From: Octopus bimaculoides
Lineage: Eukaryota
Length of the DNA: 64,000 nucleotides
Direction: 5' to 3'
Assembly: GCF_001194135.2 (NCBI RefSeq)
Contig: NC_068999.1
Location: 47,323,571-47,387,570 of the forward strand
Part shown: positions 1 through 56,137 of the stretch, piece after piece
Position numbering within the stretch: position 1 is the first letter of the stretch
Layout: every line of letters begins with the position of its first letter
Made by a program: the position numbers and the translations under genes
The notes under the pieces: model-generated
Database searches by the model: none
The model's input: only the letters and a program-made list of their open reading frames with translations
Told to the model about the DNA's origin: nothing

Positions 1-350
1 ATATATATATACTAACACTCCATTGATCTGAGTGCCCTGAATGTAGTTCTCAGGGAGATTCAATGTCATACATAGAATGTGACAAGGCTGGCCCTTGTGA
101 ATTACAGGTACAACTCATTTTTGCCAGCTGAGTGGACTGGAGTAACATGAAATAAAAGTATCTCACTCATTATCAACAGACAACCCATCATCCAACATTA
201 AGAAAATACAGAGATCAATTGATGATACATAAATTGTTCACAGTCTCAAAAGTCTAGGGAAGTGGGATTCTTTTGTTGACCATTATTCAAATGAATATTG
301 AAAATTCAATTAATGACGACATTTATCTAAAATATATGAAGTTAACGAAC

Positions 351-415
351 CTCTCAAAGGTGGAACTTTCTGTCTGTAATAACTGCGATGAACTTTCAGC
401 CTCAGTTGATGTTCC
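351..415 (-). CDS. WDR44: WDR44-like exon 3 (GTSTEAESSSQLLQTESSTFE)
   Basis: Very strong acceptor ttttatttctgtttttttctctactag, donor AG|gttcgt, 65 nt, phase 0 to 2. Confidence 0.55.
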
Positions 416-3400
416 CTAGTAGAGAAAAAAACAGAAATAAAATCTTTAAAAATAATTTGTGTAATCATGCAGATCCACACATATATACAACGGGCTTCTT
501 TCAATTTCTATCTACCTCACAGGGCTTTGGTCAGCTTGGGGCTTTAGTAGAAGGCACTTGCCCAAGATGCCAAACAGTAGGACTGAAACTGGGAACCTTG
601 TGCTTAAGATGCAGACTTCTTACCACACAGCCACACGTATAAACATTTATTAATTTTTGATCATTTTTTTGATTTCCTCTCACAGTTGCCACTTGTCTGT
701 GCAACAAATTCAAGTTTGCAATCTGGGTTTTCTACATTTTTGGTGGGTTGGAATATTTAGTTATTCATGTGAAACAGTTACCTCAATCAGAGATAATAAG
801 GATGTCAATTAATTATTACACCTTAGAATCAAGTGTATAGACAAAAAGACAACTATCAGTGATAATTAAATTGTGATTTGTCAGTAAAATTATTTAAATC
901 TTTAACCCTTTAGCATTTAAATCAGCCATATCTGGCCCAAAGCTTTCTGCCTGTTTTATGTTCAAACTGGCCAGATCTGGCCTCTCACACCTACTTAACA
1001 ATGTCAACAATCACATCATTGGAATCTCAAAGCTACGAGATAAGCCGTGATTAATTCAAAAAAATGTGAATAAACAAGCATTACATTTGACATAGTAATT
1101 TGAATGTTAAAGGGTTAAAAATTTAAGGACTACATGCAAGGGTCAAGAAATGGAAAATACATCACATTTCAATAAGAATATTTTAAGGTCACAGAAGAAC
1201 TTTGTAAGATTTCCACGAAATACAATTCAAACATTTCTTTCTAATTGCAATAAATGAAAGTACTGCATGATAAACATTAGTTTGAATAAGTTGGTCTGAG
1301 AGAAAAATTTCCTGTCTTTTGGATGCTAGGTCAGTCCAAAAATATTTTTCCAAATAAAGTTAATAAGGGTCACAAACTTCCCTGCGTAACTTTTTAACCA
1401 ATACAGAAAATACTAATTTCCTTGGGCTCTCCTTTTTTTATGATAAAGATGGTGTGAAAACCCATTCTTAATTTATGAGGATATGTATTACATTTGGCAG
1501 AATAATCTGAATACTAAATGGTTAAAATGCATTAATATGACAGATCAATAATTTGGTATTGTTGCTCATATTCATGACTGAGAACATTCAGCAAGTGATT
1601 CTAAAAATGAAGAATCATAATAGTTTTTCACACAGCAAATATTTCATAAGGATACTTACATCTTGTTTTGGCAAATCAACTGGATCAGGTGATCTGGAAA
1701 TTAAAATGAAAGTTAAAATATTAAAATTACTGAAAACAAAATCAGTTAAGTAAACATTTCTTGAGAGTACTATTTTAATGACTTATATTAACTTGAATCG
1801 ACAGTCATAATGCAGACCATAATCATCATCATTGTCATCATCATTTAATGTCTACTTTTCCAAGTTTGCATGCGTTGGATAGAATTCATTGAGGTAGGTT
1901 TTCTGTGGTTGGATGCTCTTCCTGTCACCAACCCTCACTTGTTTGAATGCAAATAATATAATATTTCCCCATGACAAGACATGTCTTGCAAGAAAGGAAA
2001 TGAAGAAAGAAGTCACTTGCATGACAGTGACACCAGCTTAAAACTAACACGCAATGTCAAGGCAAAGAGACCGAAACATACACACAGACACACATATACA
2101 TACGCACATATATAAATACACACACACATATACATGTGTATATACAGTGGCAGACTGGGTCTAAAAATATTGGTTGCCAGGAGACTAAGGAAGCCCACCT
2201 GCAACTACAAGGGGGCTCACCTGCTACTACAATGCTATCGTTTGATTTTTTTTTTTTTTTTCTGTTAAAAGTATTCTTTTTAACTGTCTACAAACATAGC
2301 CAGGCTGAAATAATTAATGCATTCTTCCAGGAGTGAATAAAAAGGTCTCAAACTTGAGGGGATGAGCCCCTTAGATACTAACATGGGCCCCCATATATGG
2401 ATTCTAACATACATACATATATTACATACATACATATACACATACATATGTGCATATATACATACATACGTGCAGATATACATAAATAAATAAATACGTA
2501 CGTACATACATATACATACATACATACGCACACATATATATAAATATATATATACATGCATATATATATACATATATAGAGGGTGTCATGGTAAATTGTC
2601 ACCATTTTATATTTTTAATTTCGCACATGCAAATTGTTTTTGATTTTGTAGACTATACAGTATTGTAGGGTCAGTTGGGCACCGTCTGTGAGCAAAACAG
2701 TACCATGACGCAATTCACTCTGCCAGCAATTTGGAAACAACATGCTGTGTTGCTTGGCATTCATACCGGAAGCTCCAATATGAAACATTTCTGAGTGTTT
2801 GAGTGTCAATTTGAGGACAATGCAGAAAATTCAGAAAGAGTTGGACGAGTCTAATGGTGATTACAAAGGTATGGCAGCTTGGAAAACTCACTCTGATTAT
2901 TCAGATAAGAAAAGATCTCCTGAATTTGTTAGTGAGACCTAGGCCAGTGTCTGAGTTTCTTATCAGGCAGGTAGTGCATGAAGGCATTCGGTATTCCTCA
3001 TATACAGCTACTACCAACATGAAAGTCCTCAATGCTACATTCTTATTTGTCACCACCTGCCTACCATGACAACGCAGATATCATAATAGCACAGTGATTA
3101 AAACTTTTCCCTCAACTTATCTGTTATATATTTAAACCCTGTTGAACAGGCAAAGCTCTAAAATAAAGACCTAAGTAATCTAAGCAAAAAAATTTAAAAA
3201 TCACAGAGACAATAAAAGGAATGTACTATGTGAGTCAATTGGTAGGGATTAGGCTGGCTATAGTTACATGTAGATATTGATAACAACACTTCTGCTTCGC
3301 TGTGTTAACAAACAGAATTTCATTCAAAATTTTTGGAGATTAGCAAAGTTGTACACTTTTACCATCATGAAAGCATGGAGAATCTGAAAACTAGCATTGG

Positions 3401-6400
3401 TTTCTAATTTTGGCACAAGGCCAGCAATTTCAGGGGAGGAGGTAAATAGATTACATCAACTCCAGTCTTCAACTGGTATACTTATTTTATCAACCCCAAA
3501 AGGATGAAAGGCAAAGTCAACATCGACAGAATTTGAACTCAGAATGTAGAGATGGACAATATACTGCTAAGAATTTTATCAAGCATGATAACAATTGAGC
3601 CAGCTTGTGGCCTTACAATCTGAAAACTAATATAGGCTTAAAATTCTGGCAAAAGGCTAGCATCATTCCTAGTGCTCAACTGGTACTTATTACATCAACT
3701 GCAAAAGGATGAAAGGCAAAGTCGACCTTGATGGAATTTGAACTTAGAACATAGACATGGACGAAATACCTCTAAGCATTTAGCTTGGCGGACTAATGAT
3801 TCTGCTGGCTTGCCGTCTTTCAATCTGAAAACTAATATGGGTCTCAAATTTTGGCACAAGGCCAGCAACTTCAAGAGAAAGGGAGAAGTCAACTACATCA
3901 ACCCCAGTGCATAACCGGTACTTATTTCATCGACCTTGAAAGAATTTGAACACAGAACGTAGAGATGGACAAAATACTGTTAAGTATTTTGCCTGGTGCA
4001 CCAATGATTTTGCTAGCTCGCTTACCTTACAATCTAAAAACTAATACAAGTTTCAAAATTTGGCACAATGCCAGCAAGCTAAGATGAAAGGGAGAAGTCA
4101 ATTACATTGATCCCAGTCCTCACCTAGTACTTATCTCATCAACCTCAAAAGGACGAAAGGTAAATTTGACCTCAGCGGAATTTGAACTCAGAATGCAGAG
4201 ATGGACAAAATACCACCAAGCATTTTGCCTGGCATGCCAACGATTCTGCCAGCTCATTACCTTAACAATCTGAAAACTAATATTGGCATTTGTACAGACT
4301 TGGTTGGCATCTTGGATTTTCAAACTGGCCACCATAACTATTTTGTATTATCTTAGCTTTTAGTCAGCCTAGAAACTGAAGCATGTTAATCCTATGCTTT
4401 CGAGGTCAAGGAATCCAATAAAGGCTTCAAAATAATGTTTAAGATTATATAAAAAAGCAACGAAGGTAACTAAAAACTATTGTCTTTCTGTTTGTGATAA
4501 TATAAGAGCATTACATAATACATGCTGCAATCTTGTGAAGTTACAGACATGGATTTATAAAGTAACAAGACAGCCTTGTTAGTTATTAAGTTGAACTTAG
4601 TTATCAAGTTGAATGATAAGTTCTATACACAGAGTCAACTGGTTCCTGTTACTCAAGGATATACTTTGACAGTTTTTTATTCTCCTGAGAGTCAGTTTTA
4701 GCATTATAGGTCTGTGGGATTTTCAGTCAGTCACTTCCACATAAAGAACTGTGCAAACTAAGTTCATATCATTCAGGTGTATGCTTTTACAGAGGTCTGT
4801 GGCTCAGTGGTTAGGGTATTCGACTCACAATCATTAGGTTGTGAGTTTGATTCCTGGCAGTGCATTGTGTCCTTGATCGAGACACTTTATTTCATGCTGC
4901 TCCAGTTCACTCAGCTGGTCAAAATGAGTTGTCCCTGTATTTCAAAGGGGCCAGCCTTGTCACTTCTGTGTCATGCTGAATCTCCCTGAGAACTACATTA
5001 AGGGTACAAATGTCTGTGGAGTGCTCGGCCACTTGCACATTAATTTCACGAGCAAGCTGTTCCGTTGATCAGATCGACTGGAACCCTCGTCATCGTAAAC
5101 AATAGAGTGCCAGTTTTTATGAATGTGTTGTCCCACAACAGTGACCTAGTACCTCATTCTATACGCATGCATTCAATGTGATCCTCAAAGACACCAACAG
5201 GAAGAAGCAACTTGATGCATTCTGCCAGATATTCACAAAAATAGATACCACCTTAAGTCAAGAATACTTTTATGGCTGTTTTTAGGAATTCCCAGTAAGT
5301 TATGAATACCCAAGTTGTGAAGTCAGTTATGTAATAACATGAAATTAGTTACCCAATAGTGAGAATTCAAATAAAGTAGCCCCGAAAAGGGCTTTAATGC
5401 ATTCCCAGAGTATACAGAACATAAGAGGAAATACTAATAAGGCATGCATACTAAAATCGTGAAGGATGTTACGTAATAGCAGGCTAATCATATATGAGAT
5501 AATAACAATTCAGAGTAAATAACTTTGAAAAGGGCTTTTGTGCATTCCCAGAGAACATTTCCTTCAGGGGTGCGAGTGCTGGTATATTCATGAATAAGTA
5601 ACTAACCGAAATAAGTGGATCGCCACATAATGGGACTGAACCCGGAAGCATGTGGCTGGTAAGCTAGCTACTTACCACATAGCTACTCCTGCACCTATAT
5701 ATAGACAATAAGAAAAACAGATACAGAATTGAAGAGAAAGATTCAACCTTCAGGTAAGGTAAGTTGTACAAATTTCAAACTAAGTTGGAAGAGAAATTTC
5801 TAATGGGACAACAAGATACATACACACAGATACAATGACGTGAGCTTTCCTTTTATGGGCAGGGCTTGCAATACCCACCAACACTGTAGTTGTTTTTCAA
5901 GCTAAATAATAAAATAAAACAGGATGTGTGTACAAACACACAATGGTACAGATGTTTAAATGCCTCAATGAACACCCAAACAAATGTGTGCGCTCACACT
6001 GAAGTGAATATATATAAGCAGGAGATGTTCAATTTTAGGGAAACAGACAGCCATATTGCTGTTCTTCAAGTGAATCACAAGGTCTACAATGAAGTAGCTG
6101 ATACTGCACACACAATATATGCTTCATCATCATCATCAGCATCTTCATTTTAACATCCACTTTTCCATGCTTGCATGGGTTGGACAGAACTTGCTGAGGC
6201 AGATTTTCTATGACTAAGATGCCCTTCTTGTTGCCAACCCTCCTTTGTTTCTAGGTAAAGGTAATATTTCACCTTGTCCAGGCATATTTTCATGGAAGAT
6301 TGGAAACAAAGGACACAATTTGCATGGCGACACTCATTTACTATTACATAATGTCATGGCAGTAACACACACACACACCCACACATATAATATTGGGTCA

Positions 6401-9400
6401 TCCCATAAATAATGCGGTTTTTTTCAGTTGCATGAACTAAAAGTTGGAGAGGGACGGGATAAACTACCTGCATCAACTTGCTATAAAAGCAGGTAGTAAT
6501 TTTACCTTGTACTTATTCTTAGTACAAGTTTTGAAGAGTGCAGTTCAATTTTAGCAGTTATTTTTTCAAAGCTATAATGGAAGTGACAAAGGAGCATATT
6601 CGGCATATTTTGCTTTATGAGTTCAATAAAGGCAACAACAGAAAGTGCAAGGAATAAATGTGCAGTATATGGGAATTGGACAATAAACATAAGCCAGTGT
6701 CAATGGTGGTTCCAGAAATTCTGAGCCGGAAACTATAGCCTAGAAGACGAGCTTCATCCTGGAAGATCTGTGGAGCTCAACGAGGATGTCCTGCAAACTC
6801 TGATGGAACAAAATCCCATCATAACTGTTGAGGAACTAGCAGTGAAGCTTGGATTTGGTCTTTCAACCATTCATTGCCACCTGCATGCCATCAGAAAAAT
6901 CAGCAAATTCGGTCAGTGGGTTCGTCACAAACTTTCCAAGTATAACCACACGCAGAGATTGAATGTGTGTTCTTCTTTGCTGTCACGTCTCACAAATGAA
7001 CCTTTTTGCGACACAATAGTGACTGGTGACGAGAAATGGGTTTTCTATAAAAATGTCAAGCACCAAAGACAGTGGGTAGGGAAAGGAGAAACACTGGCAC
7101 CCCAGGCTAAAGAAGGTCTTCACCCACATAAGGTGTTGTTATCTGTTTGATGGGATATGAAAGGTTTAGTCCACTTTGAACTTTTAAACCCAAACTAAAT
7201 GATAACAAAGGAGATCTACTGCGAGCGGCTTAAGTCAGAACTAGAAGAAAAACAACCACCTTTGGCTTCAAGACAAAAGGTATTCTTCCATCAGGATAAT
7301 GCTCAGCCACATACAGCAAGGATAACATTCCAAAGGTTGAAGATGCCCCACCCACCATATTTGCTGGACATTGCCCCTTCTGATTATCATTTATTCTGCA
7401 GTCTTCAAAATCATTTAGACGGAAAAAATATGGAAAACGGACGTTAAATGATGATGGTTTAGTTCAACCAAAAATGATGTGGTGGTGTATGATAACTGTC
7501 TTTGAGATGTGCAGCAACAGTTTGTATTTTGTTGAAGGGGACTGGCTGTTATGCCCTAAAAAGAGATCTCTTTAGGGCATAAGGACCTCTATTCATAGAA
7601 TTACATAAACTGTCTACATTGCAATAAATGATGCCTGTGTGAGAATATTTAAAGATAATGGAAGGTGGTATGATTTGCATAGAAGTGCAAGGGATTAAAA
7701 ACTAACAAATATTTTATTGATGTGTGGATGGAAGAGGATAGGAGACAAGCAAACATCAATAGACTTAGCATTTTCTAATACATACTGTGCACCAAAGCTA
7801 AGATTGCAATTAATATTTAACAGAAATGAAATCAAAAACGCTACAACAATTATTTGAGCATTATGTCATAGTTATCGCAACTCTGCATAATATACATAAT
7901 ACAAAACAGCCTCAATGCAGTGGCTTGACCTGCAAGAGTTAGCAGCTCAATTTCCTTCAAAGTTCACTTTATGAAGCAAGGAAACTGCTCTCATCAGATA
8001 TTTTTATAAAATCTGCTACTTTCAATGGCACAAAGACCACATGAAACAAAATAAAAAATGACACATTACAATGCACTAGCGCAGCTGGGGGGGGGGGTGC
8101 CGCCCGGGGCGGCCCTTCCGTTTGCCCCCACCCCCACCCGGACCCCACAAAAAACACATATTGCCTACAGCAGACCCAAAAGTGTCACCCCTTTAAAAAT
8201 ACAACCCGGGGCGGACAGTCCCCAGCTACGCTAGTAATTACATGAAAAAATAATTCTGACTGTTTTTTGGGTTTTTTTTTGGCAGCAGAAGAGCAATAGA
8301 GAAATGAAAAATTTCGGTGTAACAGAATTACAAGCACACGCTTGTAATAACCCGAAGAAATCAACACTCTCACCAACATCTACACTAACTTATAACCAAC
8401 TCTACCAAATTGCCAGAATCTAGAAACTAGGGAAAAATCATTAGAATTTTAACCCTTTAGCATCAAGTCAACCCGTTTTATGTTCAATTTGGCCAGAACT
8501 GGCCTCAACACCTACCTTACGGGGCTATTCTAAATATAAACAATCACATCATCAAAATCTTGAAGCTACGAGATAATGCACGATTAGGATTAATTCAAAA
8601 CAATGTGAATAAATAATAATTTCATTTGTCAGAGTCATCTGAACGCTAAAGGGTTAAATTGCACTCAAAGCTAATTAAAAGCGGCATCTACAGACTTATC
8701 AGCCTCACAATTTTAGAAAGGCTCATCATTAATAACACTGACACACCAAATCCCAAACAAGGATTCGGGACACTACACTCAAATCACACACTACCGAAAA
8801 TCTTACACAGAGGGTATATGATTGTTTCAAAACCCACCCCAAATCACTTTGACTACCATCAATATAAGTTATCAAGAAACCTAGCTCCAAACCACATACT
8901 AAAAGTAACACCTGTCAAAAGCCACTGTCTACTTTCCTAAAAGCAACAAAGAAAGCATGAAATACAATTAACTACTACACCCAACAACATGAGTCAAAGA
9001 AGGAAGCTCTATGCCATCGTTCAGTTTGCTAGAAATAGCAGCCAGACCTCCCTCAAACTTACACCCTATCAGATTAAACAGGAAGGATATATTGGATAAT
9101 GTAATTCTAAATATTCCGTCTGAAAATAAGATGAGATATTTATGATTGGTCATAGGTAAGCTAACAGACGAGGTGCTAAACCCGACAACTTGTTGTCAGA
9201 TAGGAATTACATTACAATAACTCCTTAACATCCACAGCCCACGGAAAAGACCTGAAGAAAACAAAACGATGCATAAACACAGCAAGAGAACTCACAGGTA
9301 CTGCCATATTTGGCCAACAGAATGAGACAACAACAATGGTATATACAGTCAAAACATTAGACCCATCATCAGTTAATGTCAGCCCTGCTACCATAAAGAA

Positions 9401-10502
9401 CACAAAACCAGTACACTTCATGTTATCACATGTTGCACACTGTCTACTGACACAAAGAAAGACGCTAAAAATGGAAGGCCACCGAGACATGTGAAGGACA
9501 AAGTTTTGCTGTAGCAGCAAACCGTGAAGGGAGTATATTTCCAGACTGTCATGCCATGACCCACCCTCACGATTGATTCATTCATGCATGTCAAAGTGAG
9601 GAATATGCTGGTCAAAGGTATCTTGAACAATAACTACGTGATTGCACCTGATCATTTAGGTGATAGAATGTTTACAGGTCTGCTCGATCGGAGCTGGCTT
9701 GGAACTACACGACGACAGATTTACAGAAATAGACTGAACAGTGGAGAGACGGCAAATACTGCAGCCCATATGATTAACAATGCCAGGGTGTTAGTATAGT
9801 CCTTAGCGAGACAGACGGAGGCATGGTATAATCTAGTAAATTTGTAATTCATACCTTGCTGTACAGTAGACTTGTGTCACAGGTCTGCCCGATCAATAAC
9901 TTGCAACATTGATTTCTTAGCTAATGCCTTATATATTTTATCTGAGTTGAGATTTAGAAAATGTCCATTCTAGCAGTTTCAGTCTATTTTACTCTCATCG
10001 AGTCTGCTTTTTACTTTCTCTTCTTCAACTGAATCGACTAAAACAAAAATAATAAAGACTGAACGACGAGGAATTCCAGCGTGAATATTAACTAAACATA
10101 GTGATGTCAGCCAAACGTGACAACAGTGAAGAAGTGTTGGTAAGATACAATCTCGAACCCCTAACGATTCAATTTAGAGTAGTTGACAATTCAGTTACTC
10201 TATCTGACGGTCACCAGTCGGCCTAACATGGTTGGTGATACAGCTGATTTGGTATGTTTAGTATTTGGATCTATGAAGAACAAAAATAGACACACCATAG
10301 TGTCTTGCCCTCTATATGCTACAACCAACGTCACATCATAATGTTTAACAATTACATACATAATTAGTACTGAGCTATATATATATATAATATAGCTCAG
10401 TACATGAAAACATAACGTTTTTAATATTTATTTTCTAAAAATGTTCTAGAATAAAATAATGCAAATATTTGCGATTACCTGAAACAGATGACAACTTTCA
10501 AA

Positions 10503-10539
<37 letters not shown>

Positions 10540-11211
10540 AGTTCATAAGTAAAGAAAAAACACATGTAATTTTGTCAACTGTTTTGTCTGATTTACTTTA
10601 TTCTGTTACTTCACATTATTGCTGTTTTCTTGGGTTGCAAGGAGCGTTAGTTACCAAGATAATTACACAATGAACAACAGAATGCTCTACAAAAGATATC
10701 AACAAGTGGATTTTATATCTTAATAAAGGGTGACAAAAAGACATTAAATGTCGGGAGCATGATCAAAGTGCAACAATACTCTTCTAAAAGCTTCCATTAT
10801 CGATTTAAACCAAATCAAAATCTCTCAATTGGAAATACTTTCTTGTTTAACTCTTAATTAGAGGGCGTCACCCAACACAAATACCAACATAAATAATTAT
10901 ATAAATAAATTCTTTTCTTCGTCATCTATTCCTCTCTCTCTATATATATACATGGTCATACATACATATATCTTAAAACAACTGAGAGATTTAACCCTAG
11001 TATCATTGATTGATCGTCTTCAAAACAGAAAATAATTCGTCGTTTACACAAATTAATGTTTTCAGTCAAAAACAGATGTCGGAAGTTTTCGTCAGCAATA
11101 TTCGGAAGAATCTATTTTAAATAAGGATCAATAGGAAACTTACACATTATGTAGTTCCGGAGAATGATCTTCAGCATCATAAAACTCGTCCATCTCGCTA
11201 TCAGACGACAT
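351..11211 (-). CDS. WDR44: 5' portion of a divergently transcribed gene, WDR44/Rab11BP-like with N-terminal FFAT motif; continues beyond the left edge
   Basis: Exons 11211-11144 (68 nt), 1693-1660 (34 nt) and 415-351 (65 nt) join in phase as MSSDSEMDEFYDAEDHSPELHNV-SPDPVDLPKQD-GTSTEAESSSQLLQTESSTFE. Resembles the WDR44 start MASESDTEEFYDAPED (recalled). No WD40 repeats lie in the window, so identity rests on the N-terminus. Confidence 0.62.
478..640 (-). mobile_element. tRNA-derived SINE family A (partial)
   Basis: Reverse complement of gtggctgtgtggtaag...ttcagtcc...cttgggcaagtg...aaagaagcccg. Confidence 0.75.
902..1118 (-). mobile_element. piggyBac-like MITE (family M1), copy 1
   Basis: TTAA|CCCTTTAGCATT...AATGTTAAAGGG|TTAA, about 210 bp, non-coding. 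Confidence 0.85.
1660..1693 (-). CDS. WDR44: WDR44-like exon 2 (SPDPVDLPKQD)
   Basis: Acceptor tttcattttaatttccag, donor gtaagt, 34 nt, phase 2 to 0, matching exon 1. Confidence 0.65.
1822..2065 (-). repeat. Dispersed repeat family C with a (CAT)n-terminated RTE-like tail
   Basis: catcatcat-ttaatgtc-ttttcca-gcatg-gttgga...ggatgc-cttcct-ccaacc. Other copies lie near 6124-6362, 16790-17090, 18270-18580, 19375-19670, 22494-22995, 27300-27500, 32484-32900, 33440-33555, 50210-50490 and 59654-59766. Confidence 0.75.
3381..4286 (-). repeat. Tandem array of four SINE family B units separated by five copies of a 16-bp motif
   Basis: AATCTGAAAACTAATA-like motif at 3381, 3617, 3822, 4031 and 4267; the intervening 190-220 bp units are mutually homologous. 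Confidence 0.88.
4799..5100 (+). mobile_element. tRNA-derived SINE family D; an inverted partial copy lies at about 20-165
   Basis: A-box TGGCTCAGTGG, B-box-like GTTTGATTCC; body is the reverse complement of the sequence at 20-165. Confidence 0.78.
6391..7436 (+). mobile_element. Decayed mariner (Tc1/mariner DD34D-type) transposon, 3'-truncated
   Basis: TA then TIR-like ttgggtcatcccataaataatgcgg at 6393. Transposase starts MEVTKEHIRHILLYEFNKGN at 6577, then frameshifts. Motifs WVRHKL, TGDEKW, HQDNAQPH and HPPYLLDIAPSDYHLF are split over ORFs 6770-7150 and 7199-7447. No 3' TIR. Confidence 0.93.
6577..7436 (+). pseudogene. Mariner transposase pseudogene
   Basis: Frameshift after GNN, TGG to TGA at 7148-7150, internal deletion before HPPY, C-terminus missing. 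Confidence 0.9.
8075..8235. mobile_element. GC-rich MITE with 16-bp TIRs (PIF/Harbinger-like, tentative)
   Basis: ACTAGCGCAGCTGGGG at 8075-8090 and CCCCAGCTACGCTAGT at 8220-8235 (15/16 complementary). Confidence 0.65.
8449..8657 (-). mobile_element. piggyBac-like MITE M1, copy 2
   Basis: TTAA|CCCTTTAGC...GCTAAAGGG|TTAA; same internal sequence as copy 1. Confidence 0.85.
11144..11211 (-). CDS. WDR44: WDR44-like exon 1 (MSSDSEMDEFYDAEDHSPELHN)
   Basis: Context gaaaATG with A at -3; acidic tract plus EFYDA FFAT motif; consensus donor GT|gtaagt at 11143. Confidence 0.78.
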
Positions 11212-11503
11212 TTTCGGGATGTCGTAAATATTTGAGTGAGTTCTTCTCCGCAATATTCAACTCAACCTACACAAACCGCTGCCATATTGTTAGTCACGCT
11301 TCAATCCGTTAGTACGAGAATTGTCAGCAAGAAATTTTTTATTTTCGACAAAATTTTACAATTTTAGATAATTAGTAGTAACAGAAAATTCCGTACCATA
11401 ATTCGAATGTTGAAATTTTAATCATTTTCGAAAAGATATTTTTTTCCGGATTTATACACAAGTTATACGCAAAATATTTCCCAGAAAGCATCATCAAACA
11501 AAG
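11212..11503. promoter_or_regulatory. Shared bidirectional promoter and both 5' UTRs
   Basis: 292 bp between the two opposed ATGs; YY1-like CAATATGGCAGCGG on the - strand near 11277-11290; CpG dinucleotides visibly retained. Confidence 0.7.
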
Positions 11504-11554
11504 ATGGAGGACCTTGCGGTGGAAGTATGCTGGCATAACGGGGCCTTTTTAAAG
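11504..11554 (+). CDS. FMR1: FMR1 coding exon 1 ([17 protein letters not shown])
   Basis: Strong Kozak context aagATGG; 51 nt; donor AAG|gtttgt; resembles the FMRP N-terminus MEELVVEVRGSNGAFYK. Confidence 0.93.
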
Positions 11555-14500
11555 GTTTGTTGCATCTCTCACTATTCCTATTTCATTTATCTTAACATAT
11601 ATATTATACCATGAACCGTTTTAACATTGAAACAAACAATAAAAACACTAGTGATACCATAAATTTCTTTTAAGCAACATCCGCGTGCATCAAAAGTTCT
11701 TGTGTAGTAGTCAAAATGTTGGCCGCTTTTAAGTAATTCTCGTAAATCTGGAGTTTCCTTTTAATTATTGTCAGTTTTTCACCTTATTTCAATTAATGTT
11801 GAATAAATATTCTCGATATATAGATTTCCTTCCTTAATATCTATCAATTAATACATGATACACTGCTGGACCTATGTCCTTCGTTGTATTCTAAATTAAC
11901 TTCTATTCACAATGGCTCGAATTGTGAGGAAATGAAATACCAAAATTTCTTCACTTTCCAACCACATAATGATAAGATTTCACAATTCAAGAAATCTCAT
12001 GAGTTTAACCCATAAAATAGTTAAATTTTATGAATTTAACTATTTCCTCGAATAGTACTACATTTTGCTAACGTTTTATCATTAGAACATACTAATAGGA
12101 ATTTATAAATATCCATTCTCTAAAGAACACGACGCGTAATATCCAACGAAATTTTGTCTTTTATTTAGGCTTTTATCAAGAATATTCATGATGATGAGGT
12201 TACTGTTACGTTTGAAGACAGGTAAGTTTGCTATTTGCCTCTTCTATTGGACGTGATTTCACAGAGAGAGAGAGATATACATGAAGAATTAGTATATGGT
12301 CGTCATGATAACACTCACTAATCCTTTTCTTATTCATCATTATTTGTGTGCCTTTTTTGAAATCAAAAGTACTTGTGTTCGTTTTTTTCTTCACTTTTTA
12401 TATCGGTAGAATAAAAAAGTTTAAATGTTTAGAAATTTAAAAGAGTTTGTTTGATAAAATTTTTAAAAAAATAATAAAAAGGAAAATGAAGAAAAAAAAA
12501 AACAAAAAGCAAATTGTTAACTCTAAAACATTTTCATTATTCTGTATGCTGGAGTTCAATGATGGGAGTTGGGAGACCGAACAAACTCCAGTAACTTGAT
12601 CCTACATTTTATAACCACGCGATGATATATTTGGAGATTTTTGTCAGTTAAAGAACAACGTAGAACAAACTATATACAACAGTCATGTTAGAGCTGCTTC
12701 TCTTCGTTCGCACACACACACATTTACCTGTAAAAGTCAGCAGCGTAAATTTTGTATGGTTATCTCTGGTTAGGTTTAATCACCAAGTAGTAGGCCATCA
12801 TAGTTTAGTTTTCACCATGAAGAATCTTTTGAAGTTTCATTTAGCCATTTTTACTGTACTTCTTGAATAGTTATAGTTGCGTAGTTTGCTAAATTTAAGT
12901 ATGTGTGTGTGTGTGAAGATGCGATGATAAAACCAGAAGCAGCCGAAGAACCGTGGACAAGTTTCAACTCATCAAAAAAATAAATAAATAAATGCTAATG
13001 GCTTAGACTATTTAAATATAATGTTGACTATTGGCGATTATATTGTTTATTCTATCAAGAAACTCCTTCTAATTATTTCGTATTTTGTTTCTTTTACGTG
13101 TAGCGAGGTTGAAATATTTTGGTTTGTTGTTCGTTAGGTTTCTCAAATGAGTTTTCAGATATTTGAATTACAGAATTAATAATTTTTTTTAATCTTCTAC
13201 ATAGAGGTCACCACGACAAATTTATCAATCGAATTTGATCATGCAATGTCTAGTTCTAATGATTTTAAAAGTTGCTCAATGTTGGTAATATAACCCAATT
13301 TTTAATTTTATACTGGGTTTGAAAGTTGTCGAGTAACCTCCTAGCTCTCATCGAGAAGGCTTCTCATCAGATTCATCCTTTTTTTTTTTTTTTTTTGGTT
13401 ATCTACGACTACATTATCCAATGTATCACTTTCTTTTTTAAGATAACAGGGTGTGATTTGACTATTACTTCTAGAAGATTGAACGCACACAGCGTATATT
13501 TGTTTTTATGGATACATAGTGAACATAGTTGCTTGACCGTGATAAGGTTTAATTTTTGAACTCGTTAAAAGTTTTTCACTTCGCAAGTTCTTATTTTTAC
13601 CGTCGTTCTAACTTCCTTTTATAAACAGTCATGAAATATTGAATTTGTCTTGTTTTATTTTAAACTCTTACCAGACTTTTACTTATTAGTTGGCTTACCG
13701 GCCCGTTTTAATATTTTTATGTTACATGAATATTTAATGTGAAATGTAAATGATTCTATTCCTCCTTCGACTTCATCATCGAAATGGATTAAATCGCCCA
13801 TACTTGTCTATGTGAGTGTGGCTACATAGTCATTTTCTATGAATAGGTAGACTGTTTGAGAACAGGCAACTGATAGGGGAAGATGCAAATAGAGACTGGT
13901 GTAGACGAAAGTACACAAATTGACAAATAGGCGTTGTTGGTACTTATGTAAGTTGTTCTGACTGACAAGCAGATTGATGATGTGATTGATTAGTCATTGA
14001 TAAATATATAGACACATGGGCATTTAAGGTCTTTTTGTGTTAGGTATAAAGGAGTTGCTGCAGTATTTACGGCATCTGTTGGCCCTCTTGCTGTCAAAGA
14101 CTAGAAATGAGATGGCAGTTAAATGAATTCTATGAAATTAATTTTATATTAAAAGAACAGAGATTTGGAATTAGCAAGTTATTTGTGTCTAAATAAGGTT
14201 GTGAGTGTATACATATGTACATATTTTGAAATGAATTCTTTACTAGAAGATATAGGTTGTTGTGTGTGAAAATGCCGTTTCGAAGTAAAGAACTTTCGGT
14301 TTTCAAAGTGAAACTCCTTCACTGAATGTGAAAGAGATTTAACAAGTATATTTCTATTGTCACAGTTATATAAAGTGCAGAGGACTAGACACCACAGCTG
14401 GTGGCTGGTCAGATTTAAGCAAATTTGGAAACTTTTTGTTAATATTTATCTTCACATTCTATACAGCTGCAACCCATTAACGCCACACAATCCACACATC

Positions 14501-17500
14501 ACATACTTTGCACAATTACTGTCTGATACTGAAATTCATAACAGAGAGTCGGAATATCTTTGCAAGAAATATTCCAAATTTTGTTTGAGCAGCGACTTCA
14601 GGTTAAAGATTTAGAAAATGAAGGATTTGAGGTTACAGAATACAACTGTTGTTGTAAGTTTGGTAGTTACAGTATATGTGCATCTGCTTTTAACTCTAAA
14701 CCTTTTGACATACAGAATTACATATTAATTTGAAGAATAGTAATAGAGGCAATGCCTTTGAGCCGTTAATATTTGGTATTAGTGATTGCTGTTAACACTT
14801 GGAATATTTTGGTCTGGACCACGAAAGTGAGAGAGCTGAAAATGATTAGATGAGAGATCAGTGTAGCAAGAATTTAAAAGGAGATACTGAGGGATACTCC
14901 CAGTTGTAAAGTATTGAGATTTAGACTGTTGGAGAACCCATAACCTTTATTAGTTCTTTTGGGCTGGTTTGATGTGATGATGTTCAGCTTATGTGATAAG
15001 TAGTGGGTGAGGGTTTTAAATCCATTTACCTATGATTATGCAAGGGGTGAAATCTGTCAGTAGGCTAAAGAAATCTGTTATGTATGTTACCCAGGAGCAC
15101 AACATTTATTTTTGAAATGATGAACATTAACATTACAGCTATACCCACACTCGCTTGATTTTGCATACACAAAGCTGTTGATGCTGGTATCTTGAAAAGC
15201 ACTTGATCTGTTCCAACAATGCAATTTGTGTTTGGATGAGCATCCAATTGCAAAACTCTGTCCCAAATTCTATGGTACTGATCAGGATCAAACATATAGA
15301 ATGACATTTTAGGTGCATGTGTGAACGAGTAGATGATAGAAGTGTAACAGTGGATTTTATTGTCAACACAGATTTTGCTGTCTGAAATGTTAATATTTTT
15401 CAGTCAGTGATAGTAGAGAATCTTCCAAATGGTCAGGTGTTCTTTTCTTCAGAGTTCAAGGAAATGAAATTTCATTTAACTTGATGTCCAGTAAAATATC
15501 CTTGAACTTAAGATACCTTTTTAAGACTAAATAAAATTTTATCCCATAGAAAAGACAGGACCCTGCTACCATCAGAGAAATGGGTATGTTTATTATACAG
15601 AAAAAAAGAGTTAGAAATGTCATGTGCTATTCCCAGTGTAAATTGTAGATACACAAGAGATGTGGGATTACAGGTAGACTTTGTATGTGGCAGATGCCTG
15701 TTAATAATTAGTAGTTAGATTACATGTGAAATAAATTCCTTCAGATGATGGGAAATCTCACAGAGGAAACAAACAGCTTTTGATGCAGTAGAGGTGGATG
15801 TTACGAAAGCATGTCAGCTAAAGTAAGAATGGGATGGGATAAGTTTTGTTGATAGCAAAGGATTACTTGTGTATCGACTGTGATGTTGCATGGTAGCAAA
15901 ATCTAGGACTTGAATGTGAGATTTGTTATGGTCAGAAAGAAAAGCAGCATGCATGCTTCATTGGAATTTTGATGGAGTGCAAATGCGTTGAAAAAAGCTG
16001 GATATATGAGGAATCCAATGTAGTATGCAAAGAGAAGGCTGTATTTATACAGGTATGAATAATGGTGTATATGGAGGATGTCTATTATCTGTAAGTGCTC
16101 AGTGCTTGATATTGAAGGAACCTATGGAAGAGAAACTGCGAAGACGGGTTGGAATATGAAGGTGATTACGAGAATTATGAGTAGCAACACAATGTTGGAG
16201 AAGCTCTGCTGCCCACCTGTCAGAATAGTGAAGGTTGGGATGTATATGTGCATCAGTTCTCTACCCCATTATATTCCTGTTAACTCTATGTCTACTCTCC
16301 TCTGTTACTAACCCTCTTTCCCTTTCACTGTACATCAGTACTTGTCTCAGAAGAATGACATTTGATCTAATTTTACCTCCTTAACACTCTACTGCTTTCT
16401 CACCGTTACCTTCTTCATTCTAATCCAGTACCCCCAACCTTCACTCTCACAGTGTCACTCTTCATTAGTATCACCCCCATCTCTCCTCCAGTTTATTACT
16501 TTCCTTCACTCTTGTGTTATCTCCTCTGTTGCTCTTTGTTGACATTTTCTTTTTTCCATCATTCTGTCACTCTTTGTCCCTTTTAGCTGCTTAAGATGTT
16601 TTGCTATTCAATATCTTTACCAACAACCAACATGTAGCTGCTTATCAATCTCTCCCTCTTCCTCTCCCACCTCATCACAGCTTCTCCCCTCATATTTGTA
16701 CTCTTTGTAACATTTACCTTAACTAAACAGACACAACATAGAGAGGACAGTTCAGCTATTTCAAAGACATGACAACCTCTCTGGTGTTGGTGCCAAGATA
16801 AAATGCACTCAATACACTCTGAAGTGGTTGATGAATTAAACAATATAAGGTAGAGAGGATTGTTTATTGTTGCTAAAGACATGACAACTTCAGATGCTAC
16901 AAGAAAATGTATCTAATACATTCTCTAAAACAGTGGTATGAATGGTATTTAACTGTAAAAACCATGTCAAAAATGGAGCACACTAGTAAGGCATGCTCTT
17001 CCGACTCCTCTAAGATAGCAGTGGCTCCAAATTTGAACTGGTTTGAGCCATGATGGTATGGAAAGCATAAAAAAAATGACAATGAATAAAGCTATTACTG
17101 TGATTAGGTATGGGATCCTAGAAAACCCATCTATGGTTTTATACATGGGTTTGAAAGGTGTAATTATTTTTAATACTACTTGTACATACCTGTTGTTTTA
17201 TGAACAGAATAAACGATATACTGTTACATTAAAATATAGCTATGTATTAAAAAAGGAAATAAAAATATACTTTGCTTTTTATCTTTGTACATATATATGC
17301 AACATTATATATGTTTTGTGTGTGTCTATACACACACACACACACACACTCCCACATAGAGTGGGTGCACAGGTGTGGGTTGTGTCAATGGGAAGTTTGC
17401 TTCTTGACCACGTGGTTTCAGGCTCAAGTCTTACTATGTGGCCACTTGGACATGTGTTTTCTACTATAGCCCTGGGGCCGACCAAAGCCCTGCGAGTGGA

Positions 17501-17768
17501 TTTGGTAGACCGAAAGTTGAAAGGGTCCCATCGTGTGCCCATGTATGTTTGTGTCCCCTTGTCTTCACATTGAGGGGTTGTTGTAAAATAAATGAATGTT
17601 GTTCATTTCAAATATTCTGTGTGAACATATCTGACCATGGAAATGATACCTTGCTTGGAAACAAGTAAAGGTTGGGCAGCTGGAAGGGTATGGAGCTGTA
17701 AAGAAAACTGCTTCAATAAAATTTATCTGACCCATGCAAATCTGGAAAAGTGAACATTAGAATGAGTC

Positions 17769-17805
<37 letters not shown>

Positions 17806-17949
17806 CTTGTTTGTCACTTGGTTGCAGCCATACTGGGGCACCACTTCAAATTTTTAGTTAGATGTATTGCCCCCCCCCCCTTTTTTTTTTAGAGACTTGT
17901 ACTTATTCTATCAATTCTGTTTTGCTAAACTGCTAAGTTNNNNNNNNNN

Positions 17950-17995
<46 letters not shown>

Positions 17996-20900
17996 GGCAG
18001 GCTTTTTTCAGTTTACTATCTACTGAATCCACTCACAAGGCTTTGATCAACCTGAGGCTATAGTAGAAGACATTTCCTCAAGGTTCCATGCAGTGGGACT
18101 GAACCTGGAAGCAAGCAACTTGCCACATCTGCTCCTTAAGGAGACCTATTGAGTCAAGTACAGCAACATCAGTCAAATCAAATGGAAAATGTAGTTGTGA
18201 GCCCCATGTGATTAAATAAGGAAAATGCAAAAAATATCTTTCTAAACAGATATGTGTATGTTTGGCCATTATCATTTTCCATGCTGGCATAGGTTGGATG
18301 TTTTGACAGGAAGTGAGCTGCTGATAGGCTGTACAGGCTCCATGTCGGTTTTGGCATGGTTTCTATGGCTGGGTGCCCTTCTTAATGCCAATCACTTTAC
18401 AGAGTGCACTGGGTGCTTTTATGCAGCACCAGCATGGGTGACTTTTATGGTGACAAAGTCACCAGGTATCTTGCAAGTTAGAAGTCCTTCAACTGGGAGG
18501 GAGTAGTGGTATTGAGGGGTGGGTGGCTTTGTGCCAACTGAGAGATTAAAGGTGTCAAGAGACAGAGATAGGTGACCTACTGTAGAGTACGATGAATTTT
18601 AAAGGTAAAATATATTTCTGGGGACAAATTACAATTTATAACATTGCTACTATGGGAAATTATTGCTCTGCTTTACAAATTTTTGCTTTACAAGTGGTCT
18701 CTGGGAATGAATTAACTCATATATCAAGGCATTACTGTATATCTTATATCTAAGATAAGTCTGTACAAGTGTATTTTATTTTCCAATGAATGTATTTTCT
18801 TTCTTTGATTTGTGGGGGTGGTTTGCAAGCAAACTGCCATCTTTTTTTTTTTTATCTAGATTCCTTACATAATCATATATTATTTAATCCCTTCGCCTGT
18901 CAAACTTTGTAGCATTTTTGAAAAGAGCAATGTGTCAGTATTATTGTCGTTGATTTCTTAACATTTAAATACTTTCTATGAAGTATCTTTTTGCATTCAT
19001 GTTATTGTTCAGCTTCTGAAAAGGATATTCACTAATTTTACACCATTGAAATGTATGTAAAGGATGAAATAAATTAATCATTCATGTGTTTTCTCATTAT
19101 TTAATCATCATTATATATGCGTATAAATGAAGATGAATAGATAGTCAGTAGTTCAAATCATGCTACAAATGTTTCAATAGTATAGTAATTTATTTGCACA
19201 GGATATATTACATAATATGATGCGAGTTCACTGCTAGCTCATGCGGGAATGCTACAGAGTTGATAACCACAGTGATTAAGATCCAAACCAATTGGTATCG
19301 ATCTATATATGCACGCACACTAGAAATACTAGCAGACAACTTGGTATGATAGTGTTATGTAGATATATTGCTAACGCAATAATAAAATGCACTCAATATA
19401 CTCTATGGAGTGGTTGATGAATTAATGAAGATAGTGTCTTGTTAATGGCATGATAGTTTCTGTAGTACTGATGTCACAAAATGTCTTGTATATACTCTAA
19501 AATGGATGATTATGAAGAGCATCCAACTTTAGAAATGATACCAAAAATGGAATATGTTAGATGTGGTCCGCCAACTCATCTAAGAGAGCACTTACTCAAA
19601 GAACTGGCTTAAACCATAATGGATTATCAAACCCTGTTCCTATGGAAAACGGATAAAAACAAAAACTTCAATGATTAAAGCAAACATTGGGGCCAGTTGT
19701 GAGATGATGGGGAAACCATCCACAGTTTTATAGAAGGGCTGTGCTTGATAACTGGACAGAATGCAGGATTCAATGAAATCAGCTTTTGAGTTATGGTATG
19801 GTGTGTGTGACAGATCCAGTAATAATAATTTAACCTTCTGCTGGAAAAGTGGATTATTGGTACATCTTCCTTTTGATACAGAAATTACTTTTGGTTCTAG
19901 GATACAAAACCACCCACTTTAAAAAGTGGGTGGTTTTGAATCCTAGAACCGAAAGTAGTCTCTGTATCAATAGGAAGATATTTCAATTTAAATGTTTTAT
20001 AATTTATTTATCTAGAGTTTTTTGTTTATTAGTGTTCCAAGCATCAGCTTGAGGACAAAAACGTTGTCTTGATTAGTTTCACAATGAATTGAAGGGTACA
20101 GGAAGTATATGTCATTAGAAATGTGTTAATGAATGGGTTAATAGCAAACAGCTGATGAAGAATGTGACAAATGCCTCCAGTCTTATAATTTAATAATCTA
20201 TTCCAAGATTATTGCAAACGGTTCCATCTCGAACGATGGCATTATTTTAGTAGGTTTGGAGAGGGATTGGAAGAATTGTTAGACTTGGCATCAGAATGGC
20301 AGAGTAGCAGAATCGTTAGCAAACCAATCGAAATGCTTAATAGCCTTTCTTCTGGCTTTACATTCTAAATTCAGATTCCACTGATGCCAACTTTACCGTT
20401 AATCTTCTGAGGTTAATAAAATAAGTACCGGTTAAACATTGGGGTTGATGTAATCGACTAGCCTCCTTTCCATAAATTTCAGGCCTTGTGCTTAAAATAG
20501 AATTATTCTTGTAGGTTTGCAAAAATTGAAAATGGCAAAAAGGTAGTTAAGTACGAAGAGTTGTTTTTTTGTGATGAGCTTCTTTTTAAATATACAGGTG
20601 TTTTTCAATCAACATAAAAAGAAAATAAGATATTTTATGCTAACTCTTTAGCATTTAAATTATTCTATCAAATGTAATGCTTATTTATTCAGTTTTGAAT
20701 TAATCATGTATAATGTCATAGCCTCAAGATTTCAATGATGTGATTTTTTTAATTTTTGGAATGACATTGTAGGGTAGGTGTGAAAGGCCAGATCTGGCCA
20801 GTTTGAACATAAAACAGGTAGAATATTGGGCTTCATATGGCAGGTTTAAATGCTAAAGGGTGATGTGAATGTCTTGGAGATGTAAGGAAACTAAAAAAGA

Positions 20901-23539
20901 AAAAATGTGCCTGCTATTTTCAGATAAATATACAATAACTTTTGAGTGAAAGAAGTCTGATAGTATTTGTGAGGAGACTTAATTTTTTTTTAAATGTAGT
21001 AAAAAGATAATTTTAAGTTTTGGAATGAGTGGTGTGTAAGAGAGGGTAGAGTTTATAGAGGTTTACATGTCCTGGGGTAAATGGTAATATGTAAAAAGAT
21101 TCATTCGTTAATAGCTGAATATTATAAAATAAATGTGTTGTAAGCAATGGATCAGAAATTAGGTTTTTGTTAAGGAAGGTTTGCTTGTAAAATATTGGTT
21201 TTATATTAGTTGTCTTAAAAAATTGATTGACAAGCAGAAGATTGATGAGAGGACAGGTCTTTAACCCTATCATGATGCTTTCCCGACTATCGCTCGAAGG
21301 ACTTGAACACCATCTCTGATGGATTCCCACTAAAGCGGTAATGAACAACACACTTAGAAGTAGTAGTTAAAATACTAATATTAGACAACTGTTCACATTG
21401 CGGCTTCGTTGTCAAGTGTGTTTATAACTCATTTGTTAATGGTGTCCTCCATAGCTGGTGTTTATTTTTGTTTTTAATGAAATAAAAACAATGATTTTGC
21501 AATGAAATGAGTGTGTGATGAACTCTGCATTTTGTCTTGTAAATGACCAAGATTTAGACTCTTGCAATTGAGGATATTTATTCTTTGGACAAAGAGCTTA
21601 CCCTTACACCAGCAATGAGTGATTCAGGTGAACAAATATAGTAGTTGAGAGAAAGGCCTATTGTTGTTCTGAATTTTTTTTTTTTTGTGATTCTGTCCAT
21701 GAGTTTGTTTGCAGTTCTTAATCTTTAGTTGATTATGCAACTTTTTATTTTGTTTTTGCTCAGGAGCCCAGGTGAAGGGTAAAGTTGGGCCCAAGGGGCC
21801 CAGGTCTAATAGGGCTAAGGAGCAACCATTGTATAGAAACTAACTTACATGTAACCAGTGAGGTAGATTTCAGTCTAATAATAGCTCGGTGTTTTAGATA
21901 AATTAAAAGATTTTATTTAGGACAACATTGCTCTTTTACAAATGCCCACTCACCACCATAAAAAAAATTTTTTTTTTTTTTTAAATGTTCTGGCCTACAT
22001 TCTAAATAAACTGAAAATGGATGAGTTTCAGAAATCTTACTGCTGGTTACTCATAAAGTGAAAACAATTGAAAATGTATATTATATTGAAGTTGTATATT
22101 ATAGACTACTCTTCTTATTACTTGAAATGAAAAACATGTAAGGGGAAAAGGACAAAAAAAATGTGGGAGTTTATGTGCAAAAGATAACTTAACAAAGAAT
22201 ATGCTTTGAATCAGTTGATTTTATAGAGGAAGATAATAGAGGAAAACATGATGGGACATGGATGTAGGAGAACATATTTTGTTAGAGGGTTATTTTCAAG
22301 GGGCTGTGAGCCTGTTTAAAAGACACCTTTATAGAGAAAATGAAATCTATTGAATTTGAACATTTTGCTGTCTAGAGGTTTTAAATTACTTTGTTACCTA
22401 CATCCTTGTATGTGAGTCAAATGGTTTACGATGTCTGTATGTATACCGGGGCAGTCATTTTCAAAAAGTTACCAATTGTTGGAGTATGTGTCATCATCAT
22501 CATTGTTTAACATCCGTTTCCTGTGCTGGCAAGAGCTAGACCAGGTTTAGACCAGTGCTTCTCAAACTATCTGATCTGGCATACTGGCAGTTTGTTTTTC
22601 CAGTGTACCAGGGACCGGTAATATTTCTTAGTAATATTAATTTATACCGGAAACAATATATATAATGACTATAATAAATGTTAACATTTTTTTTTATCTT
22701 ACATTTATTTTGTAAACAAATGATACAATGTTACAAAAGCATTTTATAAAGTTTCTTTCTGTTCTGGAAACTCGCAACATACTGGCAGCTGATGACTTGT
22801 GGACCATCACTTTGACTAGCAATGAGTTTAGATGGTTTGACAGGAGTTGTCCAGACCCCAGTTCTCTGTTTTGGCATGGTTTCTACAGCTGGATGACATG
22901 TGTGGATGACTGTGATTTTACTTGGCTTGACACATCTTCTCAAATACAGCAAATCACCACAACTCGTGGTCTTTTGTCATTTCTTCAGTGCTGATATTTT
23001 TGGCCCCGAAGAGGGAGATTAATTTTAGCCGTGTTGAGGATGTTAGACCCTAAGCGAAGGTGAGATGTAATGTTTGTAGTGACTTTGAGGGTGTTAGTTG
23101 CTTTTCCATTCATGTTTGGGTCAGGATTGATGTTGTTTTCTTGATAATGTATAGTGATTCATATTTGACAGGACACCACCAGGGAATGTTTCTGAGGTCT
23201 CGCTTTAGGAGGCAATGCAGGTTTGATGGGAAAGGGTCAAGCATTGTTGTAAATGGTTAGGAAGGGCTGAAAAATGATAGCATCTGTGGAAGTGTAAGCA
23301 GTGTTGAAAGCTCCTGTAAGTAGTACATTGGTGTATTGGATAATGTGTTTTGTCCCCCACACAGCTCCCCAAGAAAGAGATGGATTTCTGGGGAATTGGA
23401 TATGCTGAAGCATACACACATATATATAGTAGAAATATGTTACAAAAAGAAAATAGAAACTACAAGTGGAAATGTAAGGGCAAAGTAAGAAGAAAAAAGT
23501 GAAAATGCACATTGGAAATCAAAAAAAAGTAAAGCCTTC

Positions 23540-23609
<70 letters not shown>

Positions 23610-56000: not shown

Positions 56001-56099
56001 TTCTTTGTAAGCCTAGTACTTATTCTATCTGTCTCTTTTTGCCGAACCGCTAAGTTACGGGGAAATAAACACACCACCATCGGTTGTCAAGTGATGGTG

Positions 56100-56137
<38 letters not shown>

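Follow-up and report, generated by a model that had tools for sequence, protein, structure and literature searches.

FMR1 promoter biology has been studied almost wholly in mammals, and the CGG repeat and CpG-island methylation dominate the field. The human FMR1 locus is reported to have a bidirectional promoter that also drives ASFMR1/FMR1-AS1 and FMR4 (PMC2194623). A second closely related system is the set of conserved ancestral microsyntenic gene pairs arranged 5'-5' around a bidirectional promoter, of which HSPE1-HSPD1 is the paradigm (Irimia et al. 2012; PMC3514665). Here we describe a 64,000-nt (64-kb) stretch of Octopus bimaculoides DNA (NC_068999.1, positions 47,323,571 to 47,387,570 of the forward strand), hereafter the window, in which FMR1 stands head-to-head with an exon assigned to WDR44. 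The two genes form an ancient pair that is probably served by one compact bidirectional promoter. All coordinates count from the first nucleotide of the window unless another locus is named.

The divergent gene pair and its spacer

The FMR1 start codon lies at 11504-11506 on the plus strand and that of the WDR44-type gene at 11211-11209 on the minus strand, so that the two genes are divergent and their ATGs are separated by exactly 292 bp (11212-11503). This is the distance given in the original prediction, an earlier reading of this DNA that had set the limits of the locus at 11144 and 11554, the outer ends of the two exons. The features that define the pair are as follows.

11138 to 11143, minus strand: GTAAGT splice donor of WDR44 intron 1, a consensus donor directly at the end of the open reading frame (ORF)
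11144 to 11211, minus strand: first coding exon assigned to the WDR44 orthologue, 68 nt, ending in phase 2, encoding MSSDSEMDEFYDAEDHSPELHN(V); identified by ORF, donor and match to Tegillarca WDR44
10900 to 11600 (approximate bounds), no strand: small AT-rich, CpG-retaining island around the spacer, found by ranking 300-bp windows by CpG count and by the ratio of observed to expected CpG (o/e)
11212 to 11503, no strand: 292-bp spacer between both ATGs, with a CpG peak, a skew switch and homologous spacers elsewhere
11504 to 11554, plus strand: first coding exon of the FMR1/FXR orthologue, 51 nt, 17 codons, with donor GT at 11555-11556; start compared with Sepia FMR protein P0001
12169 to 12221, plus strand: FMR1 exon 2, found by tblastn and followed by an intron of about 18 kb
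30459 to 53101 (approximate bounds), plus strand: later FMR1 exons, found by tblastn, encoding Agenet, KH0, KH1, KH2 and the start of the C-terminal core

The spacer is distinguished by CpG retention. It had been described as AT-rich, and its GC content is indeed 0.32; the window as a whole is at 0.35, and AT-richness is therefore no distinguishing mark. In contrast, CpG o/e is 1.82 in the spacer, the highest value in the window, versus 0.33 over all 64 kb. Sixteen CpGs fall within 11151-11450, the best 300-bp windows reach an o/e of 1.83-1.86, and the windows ranked highest by count and by o/e all lie at 10,901-11,600. This pattern is the look of an unmethylated promoter within a CpG-depleted genome, and the island at 10900-11600 is probably unmethylated in the germline. 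Measured against the vertebrate definition of a CpG island (GC >50%, CpG o/e >0.6), the spacer has the required o/e (1.82) but a GC content of only 0.32; judged by its composition, it would work like a non-methylated island though it is not a classical CpG island. CpG is elevated again (o/e 1.3-1.46 vs 0.33) at 12850-13800, within FMR1 intron 2 and some 1.5 kb downstream from the putative promoter; this second patch may continue the unmethylated domain or mark a regulatory element of the intron.

Strand composition changes at the same place. Cumulative A-T skew reaches its maximum at 11511, with an AT skew of +0.096 over 1-11143 and of -0.061 over 11555-64000; skews of opposite sign on either side of 11511 fit transcription diverging there. 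A strand switch of poly-T tracts at this place had been noted in the original prediction, as had the lack of a CGG repeat: none is present in the sequence read, and no tandem repeat occurs between 4145 and 17950. The introns that flank the pair are long, about 18 kb for FMR1 intron 2 (12222-30458) and more than 11 kb for WDR44 intron 1, yet the intergenic spacer is only 292 bp.

Identity of the two genes

Comparison by tblastn with human FMR1 recovered exon 1, exon 2 and at least ten further exons across 30.4-53.1 kb. Pfam analysis of the joined exons identified Tudor_FRX1 (2.7e-20), Agenet, KH_9 (5e-39; KH0) and KH_1, with FXMRP1_C_core detected weakly. The product thus has the architecture of the FMR1/FXR family, namely tandem Tudor/Agenet domains, KH0 and two KH domains, with a weakly detected C-terminal core. 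The closest database match of the joined exons is the FMR protein of a cuttlefish (Acanthosepion) at 87% identity, and other molluscs match at 62-69%. The first coding exon has 17 codons ending ...NGAF.K, like that of human FMR1, and is followed by a GT donor. These domains and the cuttlefish match bear out the earlier naming of the plus-strand gene as FMR1, and the gene is the single FMR1/FXR1/FXR2 pro-orthologue of this mollusc.

The minus-strand ORF that begins at the ATG at 11211 encodes MSSDSEMDEFYDAEDHSPELHNV, which carries a canonical N-terminal FFAT motif. The core EFYDAED lies at 11187-11167 on the minus strand, and SDSEMD-EFYDAED occupies codons 3-15; a FFAT of the form EFFDAxE within an acidic tract is thus present in the first ~15 residues, as is characteristic of WDR44, which this motif tethers to VAP proteins of the endoplasmic reticulum. 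In human WDR44 the FFAT motif lies within amino acids 1-15 and is required for VAPA/B binding (PMC7199855). A tblastn search of the window with the annotated WDR44 of the bivalve Tegillarca (P0216) matched the minus-strand exon at E=4e-4, with 15 of 19 residues identical (79%). The peptide compared with human WDR44 alone gave no significant match (E=27), and the 38-aa ORF searched against a database of 1.84 billion representatives returned one spurious match, to its non-coding part (NIYDVPK repeats, P0355).

WDR44 intron 1 runs beyond the start of the window. Searches of 1-11143 by tblastn (human WDR44, Tegillarca P0216) and by tblastx against the Lottia locus found no further WDR44 exon, exon 1 being the sole match. 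A mini-exon at about 10,013-10,036 on the minus strand has a good acceptor and donor; it was rejected on account of a stop codon in the phase demanded by exon 1. Also inside this intron, at 3469-4145, are two overlapping tandem duplications with a unit of ~205-209 bp, whose translated fragments (..FHPF.VD.IS..) recur among the ORFs.

Since the rest of the gene is not visible in the left 11.1 kb and the human match is not significant, the WDR44 assignment rests on other genomes. The ORF might instead be a chance reading frame, or exon 1 of another gene that bears a FFAT motif. The lack of a detectable WD40 or Rab11-binding exon in 1-11143 and the E value of 27 with human WDR44 would be expected in that case, and no cephalopod WDR44 protein was retrieved for comparison. 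We give this alternative almost no credence: the residues shared with the annotated Tegillarca N-terminus, the consensus GTAAGT donor placed right at the end of the ORF, and the recurrence of the same exon, phase and position adjoining FMR1 in four genomes with an unmistakable WDR44 all speak against it. The minus-strand exon is, on sequence comparison, almost certainly exon 1 of WDR44. The earlier view of a FFAT/WDR44-like gene is upheld by the FFAT exon and by conserved synteny, and not by a WD40 exon.

Conservation of the pair

An exon of the form MSSDSE.DEF[FY]DAE[DE] with a phase-2 donor stands head-to-head with FMR1 in four further species, Lottia, Capitella, Melipona and Tegillarca. In each of them the annotated product or the exons further downstream identify the gene clearly as WDR44, with WD40 and Rab11-binding parts seen in the syntenic genes. 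The first exon ends in phase 2 in all five species (in Tegillarca by reading of the locus and the protein). The compact head-to-head arrangement reported earlier for the octopus is therefore confirmed and recurs in four other genomes, and this conserved neighbourhood, spanning three phyla, supports the orthology of the minus-strand gene to WDR44.

In Lottia gigantea (L001), the opposite-strand gene upstream of FMR1 has WD-repeat blocks 75-90% identical to human WDR44, and an unannotated exon MSSDSEPDEFFDAEESTPF, followed by GTAAGT, lies 324 bp from the FMR1 ATG. Capitella teleta (L002) has the exon MSSDSEIDDFYDAEDVTPARPN and a spacer of 309 bp. The annotated WDR44 of Tegillarca granosa (L003; P0216) starts MSSDSELDEFYDAEDATPRQ; the locus tags of WDR44 and FMR1 are adjacent, and the spacer is 2833 bp. 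In the bee Melipona quadrifasciata (L007), a 969-aa WDR44 starting MSGSSDSEEFFDAEDD is separated from FMR1 by 286 bp when the annotated FMR1 start is used and by ~400 bp when the conserved start is used. The bee FMR1 model (L007 10001-10117) has an in-frame upstream ATG (MEKSCTIGEQQ...) 114 nt before the conserved MEDLTVEV, and is probably an over-extended annotation.

Neither the deposited WDR44 model of Lottia (P0121, 593 aa) nor that of Capitella (P0126, 556 aa) includes the FFAT exon, and other N-terminal exons are missing from both as well. Each gene in fact starts about 300 bp from FMR1, outside its deposited model:

L001 9617 to 9676, minus strand: FFAT first exon of Lottia WDR44
L002 9624 to 9691, minus strand: FFAT first exon of Capitella WDR44

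Much of the 2.8-kb Tegillarca spacer consists of a tRNA-like insert (L003 7632-7705, minus strand) and long (TA)n and (AAT)n arrays. ARAGORN reads the insert as a tRNA-Tyr with an odd ATA anticodon; it is probably a tRNA-derived short interspersed element (SINE) or a pseudogene.

The pair is thus found with the same adjacency and orientation in Mollusca (octopus window, Lottia, Tegillarca), Annelida (Capitella) and Arthropoda (Melipona, Hymenoptera), the cross-phylum pattern of an ancestral microsyntenic pair. It is not the lineage-restricted linkage that the original prediction had counted against itself. The most economical reading of these sequences would be a pair at least as old as the protostome ancestor, followed by several later losses.

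In the Capitella locus, FMR1 is followed some 8 kb downstream by a Lamp2-like gene (L002 29982-31720, minus strand). Human LAMP2 is at Xq24 near WDR44, and LAMP3 lies near FXR1 on 3q; this hints at a larger ancient WDR44-FMR1-LAMP linkage.

Candidate promoter elements

Two candidate elements stand on opposite arms of the spacer.

11278 to 11288, minus strand: YY1-like motif AATATGGCAGC, directed towards WDR44, 67-77 nt upstream of the WDR44 ATG
11474 to 11495, plus strand: conserved element ATATTTCCCAGAAAGCATCATC, with invariant core ATTTCCCA at 11476-11483, 28 nt before the FMR1 ATG

The YY1-like motif facing the minus-strand gene is present as originally claimed, and AATATGGCAGC is the sole match in 64 kb to the pattern AAWATGGCRRC; the YY1 site itself has the form AAnATGGCG(G)C, oriented with transcription. 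The sole match in the 26-kb Lottia locus is AAAATGGCGAC (9785-9795, minus strand), which lies inside the spacer in the same orientation. As the pattern was derived from these two sequences themselves and is absent from Capitella and Melipona, the evidence for the YY1-like site as a promoter signature is only suggestive.

The 8-mer ATTTCCCA occurs at -26 to -33 from the FMR1 ATG in all five lophotrochozoan sequences compared (the window, Lottia, Capitella, Tegillarca and the mRNA contig L009). None of 20,000 first-order resamples had any 7- or 8-mer common to all five. The 8-mer is not rare in the window, and the signal lies in its fixed position; outside this element, the remainder of the spacer does not align among the lophotrochozoan sequences. 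Contig L009 is a spliced lophotrochozoan FMR1 mRNA with a 5' untranslated region (UTR) of at least 200 nt that includes ATTTCCCA, which means that the element is transcribed and exonic and is not a 3' splice site. The length of this 5' UTR further places the FMR1 transcription start site (TSS) of that species well inside an interval the size of the spacer. If the spacing in that species is similar, its FMR1 TSS would fall within ~100 bp of the WDR44 ATG, which would leave room only for tight back-to-back or overlapping initiation.

These data bear on the possibility that at least one of the genes has a distant upstream non-coding first exon, in which case the spacer would be partly intronic and not (or not only) a promoter. 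At 11477-11488 the stretch TTTCCCAG|AAAG looks like a 3' splice site, and the CpG-rich patch at 12,850-13,800 could mark another regulatory region. However, a reading of ATTTCCCA as a 3' splice site was rejected, since it is exonic in the mRNA and no AG follows it before the ATG in Capitella, and the spacer is also where CpG peaks and the skew changes sign. We therefore consider a distant first exon very unlikely. A role for ATTTCCCA as an RNA stem with the VEV codons was likewise not supported: alifold gave -5.4 kcal/mol with no covariation, the stem appeared in only two of five minimum free energy folds, and the five z-scores ranged from -0.4 to +0.6.

The lophotrochozoan consensus of the element, ATATTTCCCAGAATTCATTTGG, resembles the experimental ZNF143 site SBS1 (Staf-binding site, SBS), TTCCCATTATGCACCGCG, in having a TTCCCA core followed by an A/T-C-rich tail. 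The fit to the 18-bp SBS TTCCCA..AT.C....GCG is 11-16 of 18 positions by hand count, with the SBS consensus taken from PMC3627581. The candidate site differs from the ZNF143/Staf SBS in its GCG tail, which only Capitella and, in part, Tegillarca retain, and in being transcribed as part of the 5' UTR, ~30 nt from the ATG. THAP11 and RBPJ bind a TTCCCA core as well (PMC3627581), and ZNF143 SBS sites are enriched at human head-to-head or bidirectional promoters (PMC3082894). An ETS-type CCGGAA core is also present in the spacer, within TTTCCGGAT (11233-11241); the Capitella spacer has a perfect CCGGAAGT and that of Tegillarca GCGGAAGCCAT, and neither position nor orientation is conserved.

Promoter model and its alternatives

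We propose that a single compact, TATA-poor, CpG-retaining bidirectional promoter occupies the 292-bp spacer, and that 11212-11503 would hold both short 5' UTRs, which may overlap as the original prediction suggested, in addition to this core promoter. A bidirectional promoter is defined by TSSs on opposite strands less than 1 kb apart; here the start codons are 292 bp apart. RNA polymerase II would begin transcription near mid-spacer and proceed both ways, with the YY1-like site acting on the WDR44 arm and the conserved TTCCCA-core element on the FMR1 arm, where it would be transcribed into the FMR1 5' UTR. Both TSSs would then lie inside the spacer, the elements would be shared and the genes would be co-expressed. 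The pair would be preserved because a break within ~300 bp would cripple at least one of the genes. Given the layout and its conservation, we regard such a promoter, serving FMR1 and WDR44 as an ancient pair, as the probable explanation.

The main competing explanation is that the genes simply abut: each would have an independent core promoter, no element would serve both, and co-regulation would not be under selection. The genes would then stay adjacent passively, since few breakpoints would fall within 300 bp and those that did would destroy a promoter. This would accommodate the repeated loss of the pair (Drosophila, Daphnia, spider and human) and the harmless expansion of the Tegillarca spacer to 2.8 kb by the tRNA-like insert and microsatellites; it is also consistent with two conserved motifs that sit on opposite arms, neither common to all species. 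Against it, a spacing of ~290-400 bp is kept in four lineages (292, 324, 309 and ~400 bp), even where introns reach 18 kb and beyond, and a relative has an FMR1 5' UTR of at least 200 nt, beside which two separate promoters would hardly fit. Conserved 5'-5' pairs are, moreover, co-expressed as a class (PMC3514665). On balance we consider independent abutting promoters unlikely, though less so than the other alternatives raised above.

Several observations weigh against a shared ancestral promoter. The YY1-like site is missing in two to three of five species, being absent from the Capitella and Melipona spacers and only ATGGC-like in Tegillarca, and the bee has no ATTTCCCA element. The CpG island, clear in the window, is modest in Capitella and absent in Lottia and Melipona. 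In the window TTTCCCAG|A is formally a possible splice acceptor, and there is no WD40 exon of the minus-strand gene, so that exon 1 is tied to WDR44 through homology and synteny alone. The pair was also not seen in several animals: there is no FMR1 in the 36 kb around WDR44 in Nematostella (L004), no KH gene within 8-10 kb upstream of WDR44 in Daphnia, no WDR44 and no FFAT exon in the 10 kb that precede FMR1 in the spider Araneus, and no FMR1 in the 2.4 kb visible upstream of WDR44 exon 1 in a sea cucumber. In human, WDR44 is at Xq24 and FMR1 at Xq27.3, which are not adjacent. Drosophila Fmr1 is on 3R. The fly WDR44 orthologue CG34133 is on the X beside ari-1 (PMC4395870, PMC8826484). Because the pair is broken in Drosophila and human and was not found in the Daphnia, spider, sea cucumber and Nematostella sequence examined, the coupling is dispensable. 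The "obligatory co-regulation" of the original prediction was consequently too strong, as Drosophila and human separate the genes.

Some of these loci have other neighbours of interest. Nematostella WDR44 exon 1 (MASDSDSEGEFYDAPD) is head-to-head with a RabGAP-TBC gene ~1.2 kb away (L004 1483-9569), a different partner in the position of FMR1; the exon is deposited as part of a separate gene of 130 aa (7806-9569). A FFAT-like DNA match in Daphnia (L006 8277) proved on inspection not to be a coding exon. The bee FMR1 is followed directly by an IBR/RBR (ariadne-like) gene (L007 23935-25800, plus strand). Together with the position of fly CG34133 beside ari-1, this points to WDR44-FMR1-ari as the ancestral order in insects, with Fmr1 having moved away in flies.

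Other features of the window

At least six copies of a SINE-like repeat (GTCATTTGACTGCGGCCATGCCGGAGCACC...) are scattered over both strands, with identities of 78-93%. An assembly gap, written as 10 N, interrupts the copy near 35.3 kb. Scanning the window for Rfam families and tRNAs gave no match. The repeat copies are:

35145 to 35495: SINE-like repeat copy
476 to 634: SINE-like repeat copy
5618 to 5692: SINE-like repeat copy
17438 to 18104: SINE-like repeat copy
38490 to 38721: SINE-like repeat copy
55920 to 56300: SINE-like repeat copy

Implications

A broader interpretation, which we consider improbable, is that the FMR1-WDR44 divergent promoter represents the original form of the FMR1 locus, at least for protostomes and perhaps for bilaterians. 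The co-location of both genes on human Xq would then be a trace of the linkage, the human antisense transcripts ASFMR1/FMR4 would be the vestigial WDR44 arm, and the TTCCCA element would be an ancient control of FMR1 that predates the vertebrate CGG 5' UTR and ties a regulator of mRNA transport and translation to a factor of Rab11 recycling endosomes and endoplasmic reticulum contacts. If an ancestral two-way promoter of ~300 bp did exist, it would give FMR1 regulation an evolutionary baseline and would serve as a small, naturally occurring reporter unit containing two candidate elements of conserved position. It would also raise the idea, open to test, that FMRP-dependent mRNA transport and translation are linked to Rab11/VAP membrane traffic. 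For annotation, the FFAT first exon of WDR44 can be sought ~300 bp upstream of FMR1, where it was found in Lottia and Capitella.

Comparison with known systems

Literature searches on FMR1 and WDR44 synteny or a shared promoter returned no paper naming the pair, in agreement with the earlier remark that the pairing is not known to have been described, and the main text of Irimia et al. (2012) (PMC3514665) does not name FMR1-WDR44. The octopus exon shares with WDR44/Rab11BP/rabphilin-11 (human Q5JSH3; C. elegans SYM-4; Drosophila CG34133) a FFAT motif in the first 15 residues, after an acidic Ser/Asp tract. The syntenic orthologues carry in addition a Rab11-binding segment and a seven-blade WD40 propeller, whereas the window shows a 23-codon first exon only.

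Like the human FMR1 promoter, the octopus spacer is a short region with a divergent gene on the opposite strand. The human promoter has non-coding partners, a GC-rich CpG island and a CGG repeat in the 5' UTR; in contrast, the octopus partner is a conserved protein-coding gene, and the region is 32% GC with no repeat. Like the pairs described by Irimia et al. (2012) (PMC3514665), FMR1 and WDR44 are two unrelated genes that hold the same head-to-head orientation in different phyla with a spacer of less than 1 kb, the signature of a shared promoter. FMR1 and WDR44 are not adjacent in human, and lists anchored on the human genome would miss them. We conclude that, on present evidence, FMR1-WDR44 belongs to the known class of conserved 5'-5' pairs and does not represent a new principle.

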